Counted from the first letter of the stretch, positions 11,690-21,208 are shown. The stretch is 64,000 nucleotides of DNA from Rebecca billardiae RCC1528 (GCA_965240325.2 OZ251231.1:186001-250000); one strand, 5' to 3'. The notes: generated by a model not told the origin, from the sequence alone. Numbers and translations: made by a program.

Positions 11690-14152
11690 CTACTGCCGCC
11701 GCCGCCGCTCGCAGACGTATGCACGCAAGGTGAAGGCCGTCGCCTCAGCCGCAGTGCACGGCACGGCCGACCAGCCGCCCACGGTCCCGCCGGTGATCGC
11801 GCACTCGCCACCAGCCCGCGCGGGCTCGTCCGCCGCCCAGTTGGCGTAGCCGGCCGCCGCCCCTGCGCCATGGCCGACCGGCGCGCCCGCGGCCCACGCC
11901 CAGCCTCCGGCGCCGGCAGCCTCGGCGACGCGCGGCCGGCGCGAGTAGCCAATCCACGAGCCCATCGCCGCGGAGCGCTGCGCGCAGTACACGAAGCGGT
12001 CCTCGGTCGCGCTGCCGACGGCGACGAGCGCGCCGCCCTCCGCCCGGCACGCCTCGAGGGCCCCGCCCCACGAGCTCTGGCCAGGCCGCGCCGAGCCGCC
12101 CAGCCCCGAGAAGAGGTACTCCGACGTGCCGTTGGCGAAGGCCGGGCCGAGCCACTCGCCCGCGCGCACGCCGCCGCGTGGCAGCTGCTCGTCCAGCAGC
12201 GCCGCGCACGCGGCGCAGTCCGCCTCGGCGGGCGCGGACGCCCACGCGACCACCGTGGACACGGCGATCGCGTACGCCACCGCGAGCAGGGCCGCCCACG
12301 GCGCGAGTATGGGCGCGCGCTTGCCCGCGCGCGCCGAGGCGCGCCGGGCAGCGCCAGAGCCATCCGCGTGCGTCTGCAGCGCGAAGACGCGTGAGTGCGG
12401 CGAGCGCGGCAAACCCCATGCGCCCAGCCAGCCAGCGGCTCGGCGGCGCGCGGGCCGAGGCGGCGCGCTGCCGGCCGGTTGCTCGGTCGAGGGCTGGGCG
12501 GCTCGGCCGCCGGGCGCGCCGGCATCCGCGCGCTCGGCCGCCGCCGCGACCGAGGCAGAGCAGAGGCGCTGCGTGGAGGCGGCGGAGGACTCGCGCGACA
12601 GCGCTGTCGGCTGCGCGCCGCCGCCGCTGCCGCCGCCGGAGAGTGACGAGACTGAGATTGCAATCTGCGGGCACGCGCCGAGGGCATGCAGGTCGTCGAA
12701 GCCCTCCGAGGCGCCTCGCGCCCGCGGCGCGCGGTGCGCGCGCACCGAGAGCAGCAGCGCGCGCATCTCCCCGTTGAACGCCTCGAGCCCGCCGTCGCAC
12801 GCAGACTCGATGCATGCGAGCAACAGCGCTGAGTCGTACGCGTACTTGCAGCTGCAGCAGCGCACGTCGTACGAGGCGCTGTCGCGCTCGCGCTCGAAGC
12901 CGGGCAGCTCGTACAGCGTGATCGTGTCCGCGGCCGCGCCCATGCGCGTGCGGCAGAACACCTCGACCGTCGCCCACAGCCGGCGCAGGAAGGTCGGGCC
13001 CGCGAGGATCACAAACTCGTTGCACCCGGCGATGTAGCACGGCAGGTTGCCCACGTCCACCGCCGCGCGCGCCGACTCGACGCAGCACGTGTCGATCCAC
13101 ACGACGGGCTCGCGGCCGTGCGCGCGCACGAAGCGGCGCCGCCACGCCTGCAGCGCCGCCCAGCGCTCGGCCGGCGGGTCGTGGTGCGAGTGCGAGATGA
13201 ACGCGTCCACGCTCGCAAAGCCGGCGGGCGCGGACAGCGGGTACCACCTCGAGCGGTCGACTGCATACGCAAACGAGTCTGGCGTGAGCTTGTCCGCGCG
13301 CACGCCGCGCATGCGCGAGGCCGCGCTGTGCAGGACCGCGTCGATGCTCGCGCTGTGCAGGATCGCCGCGATGCCCGCCGCCGACGACATCAGCTCGCCG
13401 CGCGCGGCGAGCCAGCTGTGCACGCGCGCGCGCACGTCAGTGGCGAGGCCGATCACCCCGAGCGTGAGCGTGAGCGCGACCACGCACAGGTTGCCCGCAA
13501 AGTGCACCGTGCGGAAGACCGGCGGGGAGCCGCGCGCGAGGAAGAGCACCGAGTACGCGAGGCAGCCGCCGAGGCCGACGTACACAGCGGCGAGCGTGCG
13601 GTGCAGCCGGCGCAGCAGCATGCTCGGCCAGAGCCGGCCCCGGAGCGACTGAGCGACGCCGTGGGCCGCGCACACGCCCGCGCAGCCCCAGGCGAGTGTC
13701 AGCGCCTGCCACGGCACGAAGTCCGCGTAGATCGGCTCGGCCGCGCCGCACGTGGGCAGCCGGAAGCAGCGCAGCGCGGGCCGCAGCGCCATCGGCGAGA
13801 TCCAGCCGGCGAGCGCAAAGCTGAGCGCGGCCACGGCCGCGCCGGTGGCCTTGATGGCGCGGCTGTCCGACGGGAGGAGCGCGAGAAGGACGAGTGGGCT
13901 ACCGACGACCATCATCAGCAGGCCCGCAAGCCACGCCATCCGAGCCGCGCCCATGCGCCCCGAGGCCGACACGATGACCATCGCGCCGCCAGCGAGCACC
14001 AGGCACGCGCCGAGCACGAGCGGCGGCGCGGAGAGCCGGAGCCGGCGCTGGCGCGCAGTGCGCCGCGCCGCGATGAGCTGGTCGCCCATGCGCTGCGCCA
14101 CGAGGACGCGCTCCATGAGCATGTCGTCGCTCGGCTCGTCGGGCGCCGCCAT
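11690..14152 (-). CDS. Multi-pass membrane protein: ~6 TM + TIR/HET-like domain + TM + C-type lectin domain (paralog 1)
   Basis: Six hydrophobic segments; then DAFISHSH.D, WIDTCC and LPCYIAGCNEFVILAGPTFLRRLWATVEVF; a seventh TM (WAALLAVAYAIAVSTVVAW); CTLD motifs SWGGALEAC, WIGY, YANWAADEP, GECA, W..VPC, YVCE. Confidence 0.85.
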   Translation of the reverse strand: MAAPDEPSDDMLMERVLVAQRMGDQLIAARRTARQRRLRLSAPPLVLGACLVLAGGAMVIVSASGRMGAARMAWLAGLLMMVVGSPLVLLALLPSDSRAIKATGAAVAALSFALAGWISPMALRPALRCFRLPTCGAAEPIYADFVPWQALTLAWGCAGVCAAHGVAQSLRGRLWPSMLLRRLHRTLAAVYVGLGGCLAYSVLFLARGSPPVFRTVHFAGNLCVVALTLTLGVIGLATDVRARVHSWLAARGELMSSAAGIAAILHSASIDAVLHSAASRMRGVRADKLTPDSFAYAVDRSRWYPLSAPAGFASVDAFISHSHHDPPAERWAALQAWRRRFVRAHGREPVVWIDTCCVESARAAVDVGNLPCYIAGCNEFVILAGPTFLRRLWATVEVFCRTRMGAAADTITLYELPGFERERDSASYDVRCCSCKYAYDSALLLACIESACDGGLEAFNGEMRALLLSVRAHRAPRARGASEGFDDLHALGACPQIAISVSSLSGGGSGGGAQPTALSRESSAASTQRLCSASVAAAAERADAGAPGGRAAQPSTEQPAGSAPPRPARRRAAGWLGAWGLPRSPHSRVFALQTHADGSGAARRASARAGKRAPILAPWAALLAVAYAIAVSTVVAWASAPAEADCAACAALLDEQLPRGGVRAGEWLGPAFANGTSEYLFSGLGGSARPGQSSWGGALEACRAEGGALVAVGSATEDRFVYCAQRSAAMGSWIGYSRRPRVAEAAGAGGWAWAAGAPVGHGAGAAAGYANWAADEPARAGGECAITGGTVGGWSAVPCTAAEATAFTLRAYVCERRRRQ

Positions 14153-14315
14153 TGGAGTCCGGGCCGCGCGCGCCGCGTGGTCGTGGCTGTCGAGTGTGCC
14201 TTGGCGGTCGCCTCACTCGCCTCGCCCGCGCGGCGGGCCTTTGCTCGGCCTTTTCAAGATTCAGATTCCCGTGCCGAGCGAACCTCGCGGCGCGGCGCCC
14301 CTGGCCACCGCCGGG

Positions 14316-16040
14316 ATGGCGGCCTCGCGGCCTGCTGCCAGCAGGCGAGGCCTCCCATGCTCATCGCGGCGGCCCATGCTCATCGCGGCGGCGCTCGCCG
14401 CCGCCATCGCGCGAGAGGTGCCGCGGCCTCAGCCGACGCACGCCGACGACGCGATGCTCGGCCGGGCGACGCTGTACGCCAACCCCTCCGACCCGGGCTG
14501 GGCGCAGCTGTGGCAGCGGCTGGACGCCGGTCTGCCGATCAGCGCGCTCGCGTTCGGCTCGTCCGTGACCGCGACGCAGGGCGGCTGCTCGCACTCGGTC
14601 GTGCCCTGGTGCGACGCGTGCTGCGGCGCGCGCAACTACGGCCACCCCGCCACGCGCGGCTGGGGCTGGCTCCGCCAGGCGTTCGACTGGCTGAACGACA
14701 CGTGGCCGCACCGCGACAACCGCCTCTTCAACGCGGGCAAGGCGTCCACGCCGCTCGGCGGCTTCTCGGAGTGCCTGCGCGCGTGGCTGCCGGCGCCCGT
14801 GGACCTGTGGATCCTCGAGCTCGGCGTCATCCCGAACCGCGCCCAAGACGCCGAGCGCCTCGTGCGCGTCCTCCGCTCGCTGCCCGGGAGCGGCGGCACC
14901 GGGCCGCCCGCGGTCCTGCTCGTGGCGCTGTACGACTGGTGCTCGGACAGGGCGCGAATGCACGTGCGGCCGTGCCCGACGGCGGCGCAGCAGCACGCGG
15001 ACGCGCTGCCCGGCGTCGCCGGTGGCTTCCGCGTCCCGCTCGAGCTCGTGCACGCCAAGCGCTCCGGCGACGACACCGCCGCCACGCTCGCGCGCTACTA
15101 CGGGCTGAGAGCCATCTCGATGCACGACGCGTGGTGGCCGGCGCTGTGGCGCGCCGGCGTGCGGGGCGACGACGCGGTGCGCGGGCCGCGGCTGGGCGAG
15201 CTGACGACCGACGGCGTGCACCCCACGCGCGTCGGCATCGCGATGCTCGCCGACTTACTCCGCGACTCGCTGTGGCAGTCGTACAGCAGCTGGCGCTGGT
15301 GCACGCGGCTGGGCGCGCACGGCGGGCGGGCGGCGCGCTCCGCCGCGCTCCCGCCGCCGATCACGCCCAATCTGAGCGCGCACACGTCGCTCGCGTGCTA
15401 CGGCTTCGACGTGAACCAGCTCGCGCGCGCGCGCAGCGCAAAGGGCGGCGACGTGTACGCCGTGGGCCGGGGCGGCGAGGGCAACCTGCTGGCCCAGCTG
15501 CTGCCCGGCAGGGCCGGCGCGGCGGGCACGGGCGCGGAGCGTGACGGGTGGCGCATTGTCGAGCGCGAGCGCGCGTCTCGCACGCAGCTCAAGCCCGGCC
15601 TGGTGGCGGAGCAGGTGGGCGCCGTCGCGCGGCTGCAGCTGCTGCCCGTCTCACAGCACGCCCTCACCGCGCGCCGCGCCCAGCGGCCCGGCCCGAGCGC
15701 GGCCGCGCTCGGGGGCGCCGATCCGTCCGGCGCCGGCCTCAGCCACCCGTACGTCACGCTCAGCTACCTGCAGTCGTACGAGCACATGGGCGTCGCGCGC
15801 GCCGCGTGCGAAGGCGCGTGCTCGTGCGCGTCGGTCGAGCTCGACGGCCACTCCGCCGCGCACCGCATCTCGTACACGGTCTCGACCACGCTGAGCAATG
15901 TGTCGCTCGACCGCGCTCGGCTGCGCGCGGGCTGGCCGTGCGTGCTGCGCCTCGAGGTGCTCGCGCGCTCCAGCTCCGGAGGAGGCGGCCACCGCTTCAA
16001 GCTGATGCAGGTGGTCGTCGGCGACAGAGAGCACGCCTGA
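14316..16040 (+). CDS. SGNH/GDSL hydrolase-like protein (algal type)
   Basis: Block I AFGSSVT, block II FNAGKAST, block III VDLWILELG and block V DGVHP. C-terminal beta domain with LSYLQSYEHMG.A...C...CSC. N-terminal hydrophobic stretch. Confidence 0.75.
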   Translation: MAASRPAASRRGLPCSSRRPMLIAAALAAAIAREVPRPQPTHADDAMLGRATLYANPSDPGWAQLWQRLDAGLPISALAFGSSVTATQGGCSHSVVPWCDACCGARNYGHPATRGWGWLRQAFDWLNDTWPHRDNRLFNAGKASTPLGGFSECLRAWLPAPVDLWILELGVIPNRAQDAERLVRVLRSLPGSGGTGPPAVLLVALYDWCSDRARMHVRPCPTAAQQHADALPGVAGGFRVPLELVHAKRSGDDTAATLARYYGLRAISMHDAWWPALWRAGVRGDDAVRGPRLGELTTDGVHPTRVGIAMLADLLRDSLWQSYSSWRWCTRLGAHGGRAARSAALPPPITPNLSAHTSLACYGFDVNQLARARSAKGGDVYAVGRGGEGNLLAQLLPGRAGAAGTGAERDGWRIVERERASRTQLKPGLVAEQVGAVARLQLLPVSQHALTARRAQRPGPSAAALGGADPSGAGLSHPYVTLSYLQSYEHMGVARAACEGACSCASVELDGHSAAHRISYTVSTTLSNVSLDRARLRAGWPCVLRLEVLARSSSGGGGHRFKLMQVVVGDREHA

Positions 16041-16837
16041 CCCGCGATTGAATCGGCGGACGACGAGGAGCAAAAAGGATGGCGGTCAGAATCGGCGCGA
16101 GATTCCCATCTCTACCTCTGCTACATGATTACGAAAGTTGTTTTCGGTTCGATATTCGTATGTGCGCTGACCCATTATATATATATATATATATATAATT
16201 TAACGACACAGGTAGGACGACGCGGGTCTCCTGATTCGTCGGCGGCAGTGCCCGTGAAATCGGGAAGATTCATTTCATCATCACGATGCGGCCGTGATAT
16301 TGATGTTCGAATGCCCCCGCTATCCTGAGTGATGATACGACCATCGCACAGTCATGACGATGACATTCTAGATCGCTTTTTGCCGATTCACCGAATCGGA
16401 TCCTTGCTGCAAGACAGTATGCCGTTGATGAGCACCAGTGATTATGCGCTCAATTCTCACGATTCCTTGCCAATATATTCTGATTCGCCGACCATGAAAG
16501 CGCTCGCGTCAGATGCGTCAGGAGGTCTTGAGAGGGAATCTGTCGCACCGATCATATGTGGGTGTCGGCGGCGCTCAACTTCTGGGAGTAAACATCATTA
16601 GGGAGTTGGCGCGAGCTTATTTCATCAGGCGCATATGATTGTAGTCGCCGTTATTGCCCGGGCGGCCCGGTCAGTTCAAGCCTTCAAGGGGTAAAATCCC
16701 ATACCCATCAAATAGTCATGTAATGGGGCGCGCGGGTAAAATTCCGCCGCGCGCTTCACGCGGAGGGTGGATGCGAGCCTCCCCTGCACACGAAGAATCA
16801 TCATCACATCATCAACCACTACAGGGGGTGGCGGCAC

Positions 16838-19345
16838 ATGGACGAGGAAAGAGGAGACGACGTGGATGCGGCCTGGGGTCCGCTCGGAGAGCTGCTCGGA
16901 TCAGCGCGCCGCACCGCACGCAAACGCCGGCTCGTGCTCTCCGGGCCGCCCCTCGCTCTCGGCCTACTTCTCGTGGCCGCGGGCGGCGTGACGCTCTATT
17001 CGTCGGCGAACGCGATCGCGAGCGCAACGTGGCAAGCGGGGGTGATGATGCTTGTGGCCGGGTTCCCGCTGGTGCTGCTCGGGCTACTCCCGTCGGACAC
17101 CCGGCTCATCCAGGCGGCCGGTGCCGTCATCGCCGCCTCAGCCCTGGCGCTCACAGTTTGGGCCGTGCGCTTTGCGGACGCATTCGCGAGCGTGGGCTTT
17201 CGCGCGCCCGCCTGCAGCGCGACGGACGTGATCTACTCCGACTTCGTGCTGTGGCAGGCGCTCGCGGTCGCGTATGCGCTCACTGCCGTGTACATAGCGC
17301 AAGGCGTCGTGCAGGCGCTGCGGGGCCGGCTCTGGTCGAGCGCGCTGCTGCAGCGGCTGCACCGCGCGATCGCGCTCAACTACCTTTTCTTCGGCCTCCT
17401 GCTCGTGTGGGTGACCGTGCACCTCACGGTGCGCTCGCCGCCCGTGTTCCATACGGTGCACTGGGTGGGGAACGTCCTCACGTGCGCGCTCGTCACCGCG
17501 ATCGGCGCGCTTCAGCTCCTGACCGACGTGCGCGCGCGCGTGCACAGCTGGCTCGCCGCGCGCGGCGAGCTGATGTCGTCGTCGGCGAGCATCGCGGCGA
17601 TCCTGCACGGCGCGAGCATCGAGGCGGTCCTGCGTAGCGCGGCGTCGCGCATGCGCGGCGTGCGCGCGGACAAGCTCGACCCCTCCGTCTTCGCCCCCGA
17701 GCGCGCGCACAACCTCCGCGCCCTCTCCGCGCCCGCCGGCTTCGCGAGCGTGGACGCGTTCATATCGCACTCCCACCTGGATGAACCCGCGCCCAAGTGG
17801 GCGGCGCTGCAGGCGTGGCGGCGCCGCTTCGTGCGCGCGCACGGCCGCGAGCCCGTCGTGTGGATCGACACGTGCTGCGTCGAGTCGGCGCGCGCGGCGG
17901 TGGACGTGGGCAACCTGCCGTGCTACATCGCCGGGTGCAACGAGTTTGTGATCCTCGCGGGCCCGACCTTCCTGCGCCGGCTGTGGGCGACGGTCGAGGT
18001 GTTCTGCCGCACGCGCATGGGCGCGGCCGCGGACACGATCACGCTGTACGAGCTGCCCGGCTTCGAGCGCGAGCGCGACAGCGCGTCATACGACGTGCGC
18101 GCGTGCACGTGCACGTACCGCGACGACTACTTCGCCCTGCTCGCGTGCATCGAGTCCGCGTGCGACGGCGGGCTCGAGGCGTTCAACCGGGAGATGCGCG
18201 CGCTGCTGCTCTCGGCGCGCGCGCACCGCGCGCCGCCGGTCGGAGGCGAGGGGCTGGAGGGCTTCGACGACCTGCACGAGCTCGGGGGCTGGCCGCAGGT
18301 TGTGCTCGACGTGGCCATTGCCGGCGGCGTCGCGCAGTCGGCCGCACGAGCGGCGGGCCGCGCGCCTCCGCCGCCGCACACGCCAGCGCCCCGCGCGGGC
18401 GCGATGGACGCGGCCGAGGGCGCCGGCGGCACCCGCTCCGCCCAGGTCTCGCCGGCGTCGCCGACGATAGGTGCGGGGGGCATCGAGTTGGCGCCATTGT
18501 CGCCCGCCCACTCGGACGACGATGGCTCGGGGCGCTCTTCGGGACGGCGCGTCCCGCACCACGTGCCGGGCCCCGCACACGACAGCGAGGCGGCCTTGCA
18601 GGAGCTGTCTGAGGGGCTGGCGCGCGCGTCGCGGGCTCTCAACGCCGCGCCGCACGCGCGCGGCCCGAGCACCGCCTACTCGCCGCGCGCTGCAGGCAGG
18701 CCGTGGCGCATCCACGCGCGCGTGTGCGGAGCAGCGTTGGCGCTCGCGGTGGCGTACGCGATCGCCGTGTCCACGGTGGTCGCGTGGGCGTCCGCGCCCG
18801 CCGAGGCGGACTGCGCCGCGTGCGCGGCGCTGCTGGACGAGCAGCTGCCACGCGGCGGCGTGCGCGCGGGCGAGTGGCTCGGCCCGGCCTTCGCCAACGG
18901 CACGTCGGAGTACCTCTTCTCGGGGCTGGGCGGCTCGGCGCGGCCCGGCCAGAGCTCGTGGGGCGGGGCCCTCGAGGCGTGCCGGGCGGAGGGCGGCGCG
19001 CTCGTCGCCGTCGGCAGCGCGACCGAGGACCGCTTCGTGTACTGCGCGCAGCGCCTCGCGGCGATGGGCTCGTGGATTGGCTACTCGCGCCGGCCGCGCG
19101 GCGCCGAGGCCGCCGGCGCCGGAGGCTGGGCGTGGGCCGCGGGCGCGCCGGTCGGCCATGGCGCAGGGGCGGCGGCCGGCTACGCCAACTGGGCGGCGGA
19201 CGAGCCCGCGCGGGCTGGTGGCGAGTGCGCGATCACTGGCGGGACCGTGGGCGGCTGGTCGGCCGTGCCGTGCGCGGCAGCTGAAGCCACGGCCACGACC
19301 CTGCACGCGTACGTCTGCGAGCGTCGCGCCAGAGGCCACGAATAA
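16838..19345 (+). CDS. Multi-pass membrane protein: ~6 TM + TIR/HET-like domain + TM + C-type lectin domain (paralog 2)
   Basis: Same architecture as 11690-14152; the TIR-like and lectin domains are nearly identical at DNA level. Confidence 0.85.
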   Translation: MDEERGDDVDAAWGPLGELLGSARRTARKRRLVLSGPPLALGLLLVAAGGVTLYSSANAIASATWQAGVMMLVAGFPLVLLGLLPSDTRLIQAAGAVIAASALALTVWAVRFADAFASVGFRAPACSATDVIYSDFVLWQALAVAYALTAVYIAQGVVQALRGRLWSSALLQRLHRAIALNYLFFGLLLVWVTVHLTVRSPPVFHTVHWVGNVLTCALVTAIGALQLLTDVRARVHSWLAARGELMSSSASIAAILHGASIEAVLRSAASRMRGVRADKLDPSVFAPERAHNLRALSAPAGFASVDAFISHSHLDEPAPKWAALQAWRRRFVRAHGREPVVWIDTCCVESARAAVDVGNLPCYIAGCNEFVILAGPTFLRRLWATVEVFCRTRMGAAADTITLYELPGFERERDSASYDVRACTCTYRDDYFALLACIESACDGGLEAFNREMRALLLSARAHRAPPVGGEGLEGFDDLHELGGWPQVVLDVAIAGGVAQSAARAAGRAPPPPHTPAPRAGAMDAAEGAGGTRSAQVSPASPTIGAGGIELAPLSPAHSDDDGSGRSSGRRVPHHVPGPAHDSEAALQELSEGLARASRALNAAPHARGPSTAYSPRAAGRPWRIHARVCGAALALAVAYAIAVSTVVAWASAPAEADCAACAALLDEQLPRGGVRAGEWLGPAFANGTSEYLFSGLGGSARPGQSSWGGALEACRAEGGALVAVGSATEDRFVYCAQRLAAMGSWIGYSRRPRGAEAAGAGGWAWAAGAPVGHGAGAAAGYANWAADEPARAGGECAITGGTVGGWSAVPCAAAEATATTLHAYVCERRARGHE

Positions 19346-19446: not shown

Positions 19447-19653
19447 ATGGCGGGCCGTAGGTCCGCCGGCCTTGTAGTTGTAGTGCCCGGGCGGAAATGA
19501 AGATGATATGATATTAGATATATTGATATATATATATATGAAAAAGCAGGAAAATAAAAAGCAGAGGATCGCCTCGCAAAGATCGAATGAAATTAAGAAA
19601 ATCGCCTTGCTCCAAGGGAGATAGCCGTAAACGAGGGTCGGGCAAGCCACTGT

Positions 19654-20781
19654 CAAGGGCGGTAAGGGCTGTCAACTCCCAGTGGCGGCGTGGCAGAGGT
19701 TGGTCGCCGCTTCGCTGCTGCGCGGCCTCGCTCCAGCGACTAACTCTCGTGGGCGCCCGCCCCGGGGGGCGAGTGGGGCGCGCACGGCGCGAGCTCCTGT
19801 GGCCGTGTACGCGCGCGCGGAGGCGGCGCGCGTGGCTGGGCAGATGCTAAGGAGTGTATGTCGCCCTCCCACGCCGCGCGCCTTGCTCGCCGCCGCTTTC
19901 GCCGCGCCTCAGGCCAGCGCGCACGCGTGCGCCGCCTCCAGAGCCAGCCTCGGGCAATCGGCAGCCGCCCGCGCATGTGTGGTGCGCGGTCTGGTCGGCG
20001 CGAGTCGGTCGGGGCCATCGGGCGAGGCTCGCATACTACAGACGCGCGCCATGCTGCCTCGCGCCGCCGCGCGTGGGTTGTCATGGGTCGACACGCAAGC
20101 ATCTTAGGTCTGACACGAACTGCAGCACGAATGCGAAAATGCTCATGTTTGGACGCTCATGGAGACGCTGGAGAGCACAATAGACGCGCGCAGGCGATGA
20201 AGAGCGGGGCAATGCACTCATAGGACGCCGTACACGCGCCCAATGCGGCCGCCTATCACGCGCATGTGCGCTCACTGTCACGTATTCGAGCTCATTTCTG
20301 CTTGTCGTGCATTCATCGATCAGCTTCCTTCAACAGCTTCACGGGATGGGACCGGGCCCATGCGCGGCGGCGCGAGGCAGCATGGCGCGCGTCTATAGTA
20401 TGCGAGCCTCGCCCGATGGCCCCGACCGACTCGCGCCGACCAGACCGCGCACCACACATGCGCGGGCGGCTGCCGATTGCCCGAGGCTGGCTCTGGAGGC
20501 GGCGCACGCGTGCGCGCTGGCCTGAGGCGCGGCGAAAGCGGCGGCGAGCAAGGCGCGCGGCGTGGGAGGGCGACATACACTCCTTAGCACCTGCCCAGCC
20601 ACGCGCGCCGCCTCCGCGCGCGCGTACACGGCCACAGGAGCTCGCGCCGTGCGCGCCCCACTCGCCCCCCGGGGCGGGCGCCCACGAGAGTTAGTCGCTG
20701 GAGCGAGGCCGCGCAGCAGCGAAGCGGCGACCAACCTCTGCCACCGCCGCCACTGGGAGTTGACAGCCCTTACCGCCCTTG
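19654..20781. mobile_element. Foldback (Galileo/P-like) element with ~420-bp TIRs, nested inside the outer element
   Basis: Arms ~19654-20077 and ~20357-20781 are near-perfect inverted repeats beginning CAAGGGCGGTAAGGG; 7-bp TSD CCACTGT (19647-53 / 20782-88). Confidence 0.9.
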
Positions 20782-21208
20782 CCACTGTGAACCTTGGCCC
20801 CGTGCGATGTGTGCGCCCGGATCCGGCGTATTTGTTTTTCCGTTCCGGGTACCCATTTTGTATATGACAAATACGACGCGCAAGAATACGTTATGCCCCT
20901 CTTCTGCAGCTGCGCGCCGCTTGGCCGGCGCGCGGCGACGCGCACCGTACGACCTCATCCTCGTCCAGGCGCCCACGCGGGCGCACGGGGGCGACAGCCG
21001 CGGCTGCCGCTTGCCGGAGCTGCTCGCCGCTAGGTCGGCGGGCGGCGACATCGACTACGACCTCACCCTCATCCAAGTGCTCCGGAAGGCGCTCGGCCGC
21101 GGCGGCATCTGCCGTCGCCGCCGCGTGCCCCAGGCCGAGGCGGTGCTCCATCCCGGCCCCGCTCCCGTAGGGGGGCAGGGCTGCGGGTGGCGCACTGTCT
21201 GACCTGGT

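Follow-up and report, generated by a model that had tools for sequence, protein, structure and literature searches.

Locus and reading frames

Within a 64,000-nucleotide stretch of the Rebecca billardiae RCC1528 genome (GCA_965240325.2 OZ251231.1:186001-250000, here called the window), positions 11690 to 19345 hold two long open reading frames (ORFs) that are arranged head to head with about 2.7 kb between them. Gene A (11690..14152, minus strand) is a complete ORF of 820 amino acids (aa), in which a predicted six-helix membrane bundle is followed by a TIR/HET-like domain, a seventh membrane helix and a C-type-lectin-like domain (CTLD); gene B (16838..19345, plus strand) is a complete ORF of 835 aa with the same architecture. 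An earlier note on this DNA had described the two as a pair of candidate immune receptors. An ORF search returned both frames where that note had placed them, and the pairing is borne out by 67% amino acid identity between A and B over the full length (BLASTP; a local tblastn matched only the CTLD segment of gene A, and the full-length BLASTP alignment was preferred). The motifs it had named were likewise found in their places, i.e. FISHS at A318 and B308, WIDTCC at A352 and B342, RLWATVE at A391 and B381, EPA at A776 and B789, and WSA at A794 and B807. A and B are paralogous and probably intronless genes.

The DNA of the locus has about 75% G+C, and spurious ORFs as long as 808 aa cross the real genes in other frames, e.g. 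at 13118-15544 (plus strand). Since stop codons are rare at such a high G+C content, ORF length alone is no proof of a gene in this genome, and because chance ORFs reach about 800 codons, the coding status of the A and B frames was checked separately. The G+C fraction at first, second and third codon positions is 0.72/0.63/0.93 in A and 0.74/0.60/0.91 in B; in each folded domain of both copies, it is 0.89-1.0 at third positions (GC3) versus 0.49-0.71 at second positions (GC2). In addition, relatives align with A and B end to end, beginning with the basic stretch at the N-terminus and extending as far as the closing YVCE. The two reading frames are real and not an artefact of base composition. 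A search of sequencing runs listed none of RNA that contains this sequence. One low-share run yielded three contigs of 151 nt, which lie inside a block of near identity between A and B (see below) and are uninformative on expression and splicing.

Membrane bundle and topology

Residues 1-304 of B were modelled with AlphaFold2 from an alignment of 56 N-terminal regions (model m2ac7ff9180d7, pLDDT 89.6). The model contains long helices at residues 33-56, 64-82, 88-122, 129-161, 167-199 and 207-227, followed by three short soluble helices. From this model and from hydropathy, the six-helix membrane bundle of B was delimited to aa 33-229 (16934..17524, plus strand); that of A (aa 42-238; 13439..14029, minus strand) was placed by hydropathy and by alignment to B and its model. 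Six N-terminal hydrophobic segments had been claimed for both proteins, and six are seen in B; in A, hydropathy yields five clear segments and a weak one. The bundle leads into a conserved helical linker predicted to be cytosolic, which comprises aa 230-300 in B (17525..17737, plus strand; modelled helices 229-241, 244-257 and 261-271) and aa 239-310 in A (13223..13438, minus strand), where it reads WLAARGE...IAAIL...MRGV and was recognised by its conservation in the family and by the helices of the B model. L239, A250, R273 and L280 of the B linker are invariant in the family alignment.

The bundle model resembled no specific solved fold: generic helical bundles, BAR domains and designed proteins were the only structures that matched (VIA-align Z of at most 9.1, Foldseek E of at least 0.5). 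These matches are within the noise of helical bundles, and to call the bundle a G-protein-coupled receptor, a channel or a transporter would be unjustified. An Atlas feature search with the bundle led to unnamed haptophyte clusters only, and Pfam gave no match in the N-terminal or central parts of either window protein.

A further hydrophobic segment after the central domain had been expected from the earlier reading, and hydropathy places it at about residues 620-640 in A and 629-650 in B. We assign this seventh membrane helix to aa 617-639 in A (12236..12304, minus strand; hydropathy 2.08) and to aa 630-652 in B (18725..18793, plus strand; hydropathy 2.15), with an asymmetry of the flanking charges: Lys, Arg and His precede the helix, and Asp and Glu follow it. 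Under a model with the N-terminus inside, the number of Lys and Arg residues in inside versus outside loops is 16 versus 2 in B and 18 versus 6 in A. The sole N-x-S/T sequon of B (N-x-T, N687) is located beyond the seventh helix, and so are all seven conserved Cys residues of the C-terminal part. Based on loop charges and on the positions of sequon and Cys residues, the TIR-like domain is predicted to be cytosolic and the CTLD exoplasmic. The topology that had been put forward, with TIR/HET inside and lectin outside, is thus self-consistent, with the two domains predicted on opposite sides of the membrane.

The central domain

The TIR/HET-like domain covers aa 301-470 of B (17738..18247, plus strand) and aa 311-480 of A (12713..13222, minus strand); the latter was identified by the FISHS, WIDTCC and RLWATVE motifs and by 83% identity to the modelled B domain. 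For the model (m28f6dd7bcca0, pLDDT 90.5), residues 285-475 of B were submitted to AlphaFold2 with 92 aligned sequences. Strands and helices alternate in the order betaA-alphaA-betaB-BB loop-alphaB-betaC-alphaC-betaD, which is a flavodoxin-like arrangement as in TIR domains. Beta-A comprises VDAFISH (305-311), beta-B VWI (341-343) and alpha-C LWATVEVFCRTR (382-393) with W383 and E387, so that the assignment of FISHS to beta-A, WID to beta-B and LWATVE to alpha-C holds in this model. When the domain was compared with TIR and SARM1 folds, as the earlier note had suggested, a TIR fold emerged. All of the top 50 Foldseek matches in the PDB were TIR domains, including those of RPP1, SARM1, RUN1, SPARTA and TLR10. 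With VIA-align, the SARM1 TIR domain scored best (Z 11.2, root-mean-square deviation 3.0, 118 residues aligned, model residues 20-187), and Z values of 9-10 were obtained for plant, bacterial and animal TIRs. At the sequence level, a search of PDB sequences with the family profile placed TIR domains alone on top (E of about 0.2), and a search with the central domain as a single sequence gave chance matches only. We conclude that the domain is predicted to adopt a TIR fold of a HET-like branch.

The HET-like character is seen mainly in the relatives. Weak matches to TIR_2 (PF13676) were found in 51 of 92 relatives, ranging from sub-threshold to marginal (best E 8.2e-7), and weak matches to HET (PF06985) in 55 of the 92 (best E 4.5e-4), none of which reaches the Pfam cut-off of 22.5 bits. 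Those HET matches for which positions are shown cover profile positions of about 44-63 only, i.e. some 20 of 146 (the WID..CI.Q block). In the family consensus, the blocks ISHSW, VWxDKxCIDQ and RLWCxxEL are spaced about 30 and 38 residues apart, to be compared with an LSYxWG-like block, WIDxLCIxQ and RxWxxQE of HET; the window copies read ISHSH, VWIDTCCVES and RLWATVEV. HET-like domains have been found in Haptophyceae and are remote homologues of TIR (Dyrka et al. 2014, PMC4986451), and weak matches to both TIR_2 and HET are the pattern expected of such non-fungal HET-like sequences. The resemblance to HET domains noticed earlier therefore stands in so far as relatives match HET weakly, which fits the published HET-TIR homology, but it does not extend to a match of the window proteins to Pfam HET. 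The PADLOC defence models matched nothing in the window; in the set of 92 relatives they gave only four hits, all marginal and ThsB-like.

According to the HMMER alignment, the conserved glutamate of the family (E387 in B, profile E103) corresponds to the Glu of the SNC1 WCLNEL motif. In the window proteins this residue (B E387, A E397) is part of LWATVE on the modelled alpha-C, and 89 of 90 relatives have Glu at this place. The Glu of SNC1 WCLNEL and E642 of SARM1 are catalytic residues. The WxxxE glutamate of TIR NADases, which the earlier note had pointed out, is present in A and B and aligned as expected; that they would also share the activity is inferred. Compared with the 90 relatives, both copies further retain the invariant residues D306, S312, W342, D344, G375, R381 and W383 along with the near-invariant E387.

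Linker and C-type-lectin-like ectodomain

The TIR-like domain and the seventh helix are joined by a low-complexity, poorly conserved linker, which extends over aa 486-612 in A (12317..12697, minus strand; 41% amino acid identity to B over aligned codons) and, as delimited by the alignment, aa 476-625 in B (18263..18712, plus strand; dN/dS 0.6), with weak codon periodicity in both. The G+C periodicity of codon positions is nearly gone at 18290-18520 in B (aa of about 485-560) and at 12350-12670 in A (aa of about 495-600). We treat the linker as a probably disordered, Ala/Gly/Pro/Arg-rich region of about 130-150 residues rather than as the alternative, an in-frame intron, because both copies are in frame across it and a homologue in Diacronema lutheri is encoded by a single exon.

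The ectodomain consists of an ADCAAC motif and the CTLD and includes the EPA and WSA motifs; it spans aa 647-819 in A (11696..12214, minus strand) and aa 660-832 in B (18815..19333, plus strand). The C-type lectin fold that the earlier note had seen at the C-terminus is confirmed by Pfam Lectin_C (PF00059), with 32.8 bits in A (E 1.2e-7) and 31.1 bits in B (E 4.1e-7) versus a gathering score of 22.6. Searches of PDB sequences matched the C-terminus to CTLDs of FcRY, PLA2R and DEC-205 (mannose-receptor family) and of DC-SIGN, with E values down to 7.8e-17. WIGY, WAW, ECA, VPC and YVCE are common to the window CTLDs and their homologues. EPA and WSA indeed replace EPN and WND in both copies, and with one or two partial exceptions the CTLD-bearing homologues lack EPN/QPD and WND as well. 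As the triad for Ca2+ and sugar is missing, glycan binding is unsupported; judged from sequence, the CTLD fold of the C-terminus is certain and sugar binding is not.

The seven Cys residues of the ectodomain, an odd number, include those of ADCAxC right after the seventh helix and are apparently kept in most CTLD-bearing relatives. An unpaired Cys could form an interchain disulfide and so link two chains covalently, a kind of dimer known from some CTLD receptors of animals.

A large, mainly haptophyte family

When 1.8 billion representative proteins were searched by phmmer for the central domain, 1,943 clusters passed a threshold of E<=1e-3, and 1,094 passed E<=1e-10. By this sequence measure, the domain defines a large, mainly haptophyte and so far unnamed family. 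A and B carry its features: the N-terminal helix bundle, the WLAARGE...FR linker, and the motifs D-A-F-x-S-H-S, W-x-D-x-x-C and R-L-W-x-x-x-E. Most of 153 relatives inspected have 450-550 aa, with an N-terminal multi-helix region and the TIR-like domain directly after it; at least one N-terminal helix was predicted in 114 and at least two in 103 of the 153, and an extra hydrophobic helix downstream of the TIR-like domain in 14.

The relatives P0009, P0011, P0015, P0030, P0032 and P0108 have the complete layout, including a seventh helix and Lectin_C; it is seen less clearly in P0045 (D. lutheri KAG8461360.1) and in P0003. The earlier note had not known this architecture as a characterised system. 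It is uncharacterised, but not unique, as shown by its recurrence in D. lutheri, Pavlovales sp. CCMP2436 and the environmental contigs. On the tree of TIR-like domains, the CTLD-bearing proteins cluster (4 changes versus 9.8 in shuffles; none of 500 shuffles was as low), and an ADCAxC motif just after the seventh helix is common to the CTLDs of this clade.

Structural neighbours of the TIR-like domain in the Atlas were haptophyte clusters at TM scores of 0.78-0.85. The same fold occurs there fused to HNOB, TPR (oomycete, ascomycete) or DUF285 modules, which suggests that it is a shared output module joined to various sensors. No viral relatives were found by tblastn against phage records, and a family-motif scan of IMG/VR confirmed none. 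These searches gave no sign of a viral origin or of viral decoys; the best match in BFVD was a generic TIR/WD40 protein of Tetraselmis virus 1 (E 1e-3).

Our literature search found no description of a TIR/HET-like domain joined to a CTLD ectodomain. Parts of the picture are already known, i.e. haptophyte HET-like domains (2014), multi-helix TIRs of Gephyrocapsa huxleyi (2025) and full-layout homologues deposited as hypothetical proteins.

Gene conversion between A and B

The DNA identity of A and B is a mosaic: it amounts to 100% at 17844-18083 and about 99% at 18760-19239, versus 50-75% elsewhere, and the flanks outside the ORFs gave no alignment between the two. Two gene-conversion blocks were delimited. 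Block 1 covers the TIR-like core (17798..18128, paired with 12832-13162; 331 nt, 96%) and block 2 the seventh helix plus CTLD (18742..19326, paired with 11703-12287; 585 nt, 97%). Synonymous divergence (dS) is 0.017 in the converted TIR core as opposed to 0.59 in the helix bundle. The latter (16934-17524 versus 13439-14029) is the fastest-evolving folded part, with 50% identity and a dN/dS of about 0.8, a value that is uncertain in view of the extreme GC3. Mosaic identity together with the low dS of the TIR core points to gene conversion, and indicates an old inverted duplication followed by continuing gene conversion that is limited to the TIR-like core and to the seventh helix and CTLD. This hints that any function specific to one paralogue would be carried by the membrane bundle or the linker rather than by the domain with the lectin fold.

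Comparison with known systems

Enzymatic TIRs (SARM1; RUN1, RPP1 and SNC1; AbTir, ThsB and SPARTA) resemble A and B in fold (Z 9-11) and in the WxxxE Glu on alpha-C, and self-association is expected to be needed in all of them, A and B included. In contrast, sequence identity is only 12-20%, the A/B domain sits between membrane helices and has an extra conserved C-terminal helical part (FDV..C.C...D..RLL..IE...G...FN), and its activity is a prediction. Animal Toll-like receptors (TLRs) and IL-1 receptors share with A and B the coupling of an outside recognition domain across the membrane to a TIR fold inside. TLRs are single-pass proteins with a leucine-rich-repeat (LRR) ectodomain and a C-terminal cytosolic TIR domain, whereas A and B have no LRR according to Pfam, but seven helices, the TIR-like domain between helices 6 and 7, and the ectodomain at the C-terminus. 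Animal C-type lectin receptors (Dectin-1, DC-SIGN) have the same ectodomain fold as A and B; animal CTLD receptors signal via ITAM or hemITAM (immunoreceptor tyrosine-based activation motifs) and not via TIR. All these animal TLR, IL-1 and C-type lectin receptors are analogues of A and B and not members of the family.

Two proteins annotated as hypothetical, D. lutheri KAG8461360.1 (KFE25_010547) and Pavlovales sp. CCMP2436 T492DRAFT_1139068, like A and B combine a multi-helix region, a TIR-like domain, a helix and a CTLD-like domain, with about 35-40% identity to A and B in the TIR-like domain. The D. lutheri gene consists of a single exon, stands alone rather than in an inverted pair and has unrelated neighbours; for its protein, Lectin_C (E 0.035) does not reach the cut-off.

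The membrane TIRs of Gephyrocapsa (Emiliania) huxleyi (New Phytol 2025, PMC12489294) are, like A and B, haptophyte proteins with N-terminal multi-helix regions or ectodomains, an intracellular TIR fold and a conserved Glu, and have been proposed to be receptor-like. On the other hand, they are defined by Pfam TIR models, their description mentions no further domains, neither a seventh helix nor a C-type-lectin ectodomain is reported for them, and they need not belong to the same HET-like subfamily. According to that study, the catalytic Glu is retained in those TIR genes of G. huxleyi that code for N-terminal multi-helix regions or ectodomains; the genes are expressed in the 'virocell' clusters, and for some of them this is seen within 0.5 h after the virus was added (PMC12489294). 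Fungal HET domains (PF06985; PMC4986451) appear to have in common with the family the three conserved blocks on beta-A, beta-B and alpha-C (ISHSW, WIDxxCIDQ, RLWCxxE). The window copies deviate from the HET block in reading WIDTCCVES, without Q, and the membrane-embedded architecture and the CTLD of A and B are not contexts of fungal HET.

Proposed mechanism and alternative explanations

We propose, with moderate confidence, that A and B are multipass membrane receptors of a mainly haptophyte family, in which clustering triggered by the CTLD activates the cytosolic TIR-like domain. As judged by sequence, the predicted fold and the loop charges, a cytosolic N-terminus leads into the six-helix bundle, the three-helix cytosolic linker, the TIR-fold domain, the disordered linker, the seventh helix and finally the exoplasmic CTLD. 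A surface ligand, more likely a protein or a non-canonical glycan than a classical Ca2+-bound sugar, would bind the ectodomains and cluster them, and this would draw the cytosolic TIR-like domains together. Once assembled, these domains may cleave NAD+ or make a nucleotide signal, by analogy to SARM1 and to the TIRs of plants and bacteria; alternatively, they may seed a signalling complex of homotypic TIR/HET contacts. Either route would end in defence or in regulated cell death. The bundle of six helices may be the ancestral partner of the TIR-like domain and act either as an anchor and oligomerisation module or as a second sensor. An innate-immune role, NADase activity and glycan recognition are putative in A and B. 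The earlier picture of a Toll-like receptor analogue built from different parts holds in silico with respect to TIR fold, topology and CTLD, but the lectin is not a defining part of the family. A bolder version sees a convergent single-polypeptide Toll-like receptor, whose CTLD senses a viral or bacterial surface and whose HET-like TIR NADase, through its product or its assembly, acts on its own six-helix bundle (which might, for instance, open into a pore or channel); we regard this as improbable. If true, sensor, enzyme and effector would be united in one chain, and a first biochemical mechanism would be at hand for the HET branch of TIR domains.

Several points weigh against the proposed receptor mechanism. 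In about 90% of the relatives examined, the TIR-like domain is followed by neither a helix nor a CTLD, so that signalling in the family cannot generally depend on the lectin, which is an add-on to an older six-helix-plus-TIR module. EPN/QPD and WND are absent, with EPA and WSA at the aligned places. The CTLD is homogenised between the paralogues and the helix bundle evolves fast, whereas a variable sensor of pathogens should show the reverse, and the membrane could be an internal one with a lumenal CTLD instead of the plasma membrane. As to the central domain, neither the TIR nor the HET models of Pfam match the window proteins, even when E<=1 is allowed, and no biochemical mechanism is known for HET domains (PMC10197012). 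Both copies also carry W313H, Q350S and C384A at positions where 98% of 90 relatives have W, 92% have Q and 100% have C, respectively. A and B could be catalytically altered by these replacements, which lower our confidence that they have the activity typical of the family.

The same three replacements at near-invariant positions would also fit a different role within the same architecture, namely a TIR/HET-like domain that is a non-enzymatic adaptor and, without cleaving NAD+, recruits TIR/HET-like proteins of the family in the manner of TLR-MyD88 or of the proposed fungal HET. The non-enzymatic TIRs of IL-18R-beta and MyD88 match the model at Z 10.0-10.4, tied with enzymes, the very large family offers candidate homotypic partners, and HET signalling of the adaptor type has been proposed by Dyrka et al. 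(PMC4986451). Yet the WxxxE glutamate is kept in both window copies and in nearly all relatives and is aligned with the Glu of SNC1 WCLNEL, and the best structural match is an NADase, SARM1; we consider an adaptor possible but rather unlikely. A and B may, on the other hand, be no pathogen sensors at all, but serve self or cell-surface recognition (gamete or cell-cell contact, allorecognition, the cell's own scales or glycocalyx) or be trafficking proteins of an internal membrane with a lumenal CTLD. This would agree with a CTLD that lacks the canonical site for sugars and has stayed identical in the two paralogues instead of diversifying, with the function of HET domains in fungal allorecognition (PMC10197012), with the gene for a secreted or anchored SGNH-type esterase-like protein between A and B, and with a membrane of residence that may be an internal one. 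Nothing specific indicates mating or adhesion, however, and the only expression data that we found for haptophyte membrane TIR genes tie them to virus infection (PMC12489294), although those genes need not be members of the present family; we judge a non-pathogen role unlikely.

A silent or decaying state of one or both duplicates, whose frames would then be open only because stop codons are rare at 75% G+C, appears very improbable. Very long spurious ORFs do occur in other frames, no RNA run with the sequence was listed, the dN/dS of the helix bundle is 0.8 and conserved residues are substituted. Against this, GC3 exceeds GC2 in all folded domains of both copies within the ranges given above, the remaining invariant residues of the family are all retained, both models reach a pLDDT of about 90, and 820 and 835 codons are intact with homology from end to end.

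Giant viruses control the populations of haptophytes, which are among the major algae that form blooms. To our knowledge, haptophyte immune receptors are essentially unknown, and the family described here provides, from sequence and predicted structure, concrete candidates for surface sensing in these algae. Its central domain, soluble and from outside the fungi, would also give access to the biochemistry of cell-death domains of the HET type, and the domain-restricted gene conversion hints at which parts carry paralogue-specific function.

Neighbourhood of the gene pair

Between A and B lies a gene at 14316-16040 (plus strand), which is divergent from gene A, the two starts being 163 bp apart. 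Its product has about 574 aa, is hydrophobic at the N-terminus (a signal or anchor) and contains motifs of the GSS and DGVHP type. An Atlas feature search with this protein pointed to clusters of SGNH-hydrolase-type esterases from haptophytes and chlorophytes (score 0.97); Pfam gave no match. The intergenic region 16041-16837 upstream of gene B has a G+C content of 51%, compared with 65-80% in the rest of the window. Directly 3' of gene B, a palindromic element of about 1.14 kb (19648-20787) was found, with arms at 19690-20077 and 20357-20744 (388 nt, 99% complementary) and outer arms of 43 nt at 19648-19690 and 20745-20787. This element may be an insertion of the foldback type or one resembling a miniature inverted-repeat transposable element (MITE).

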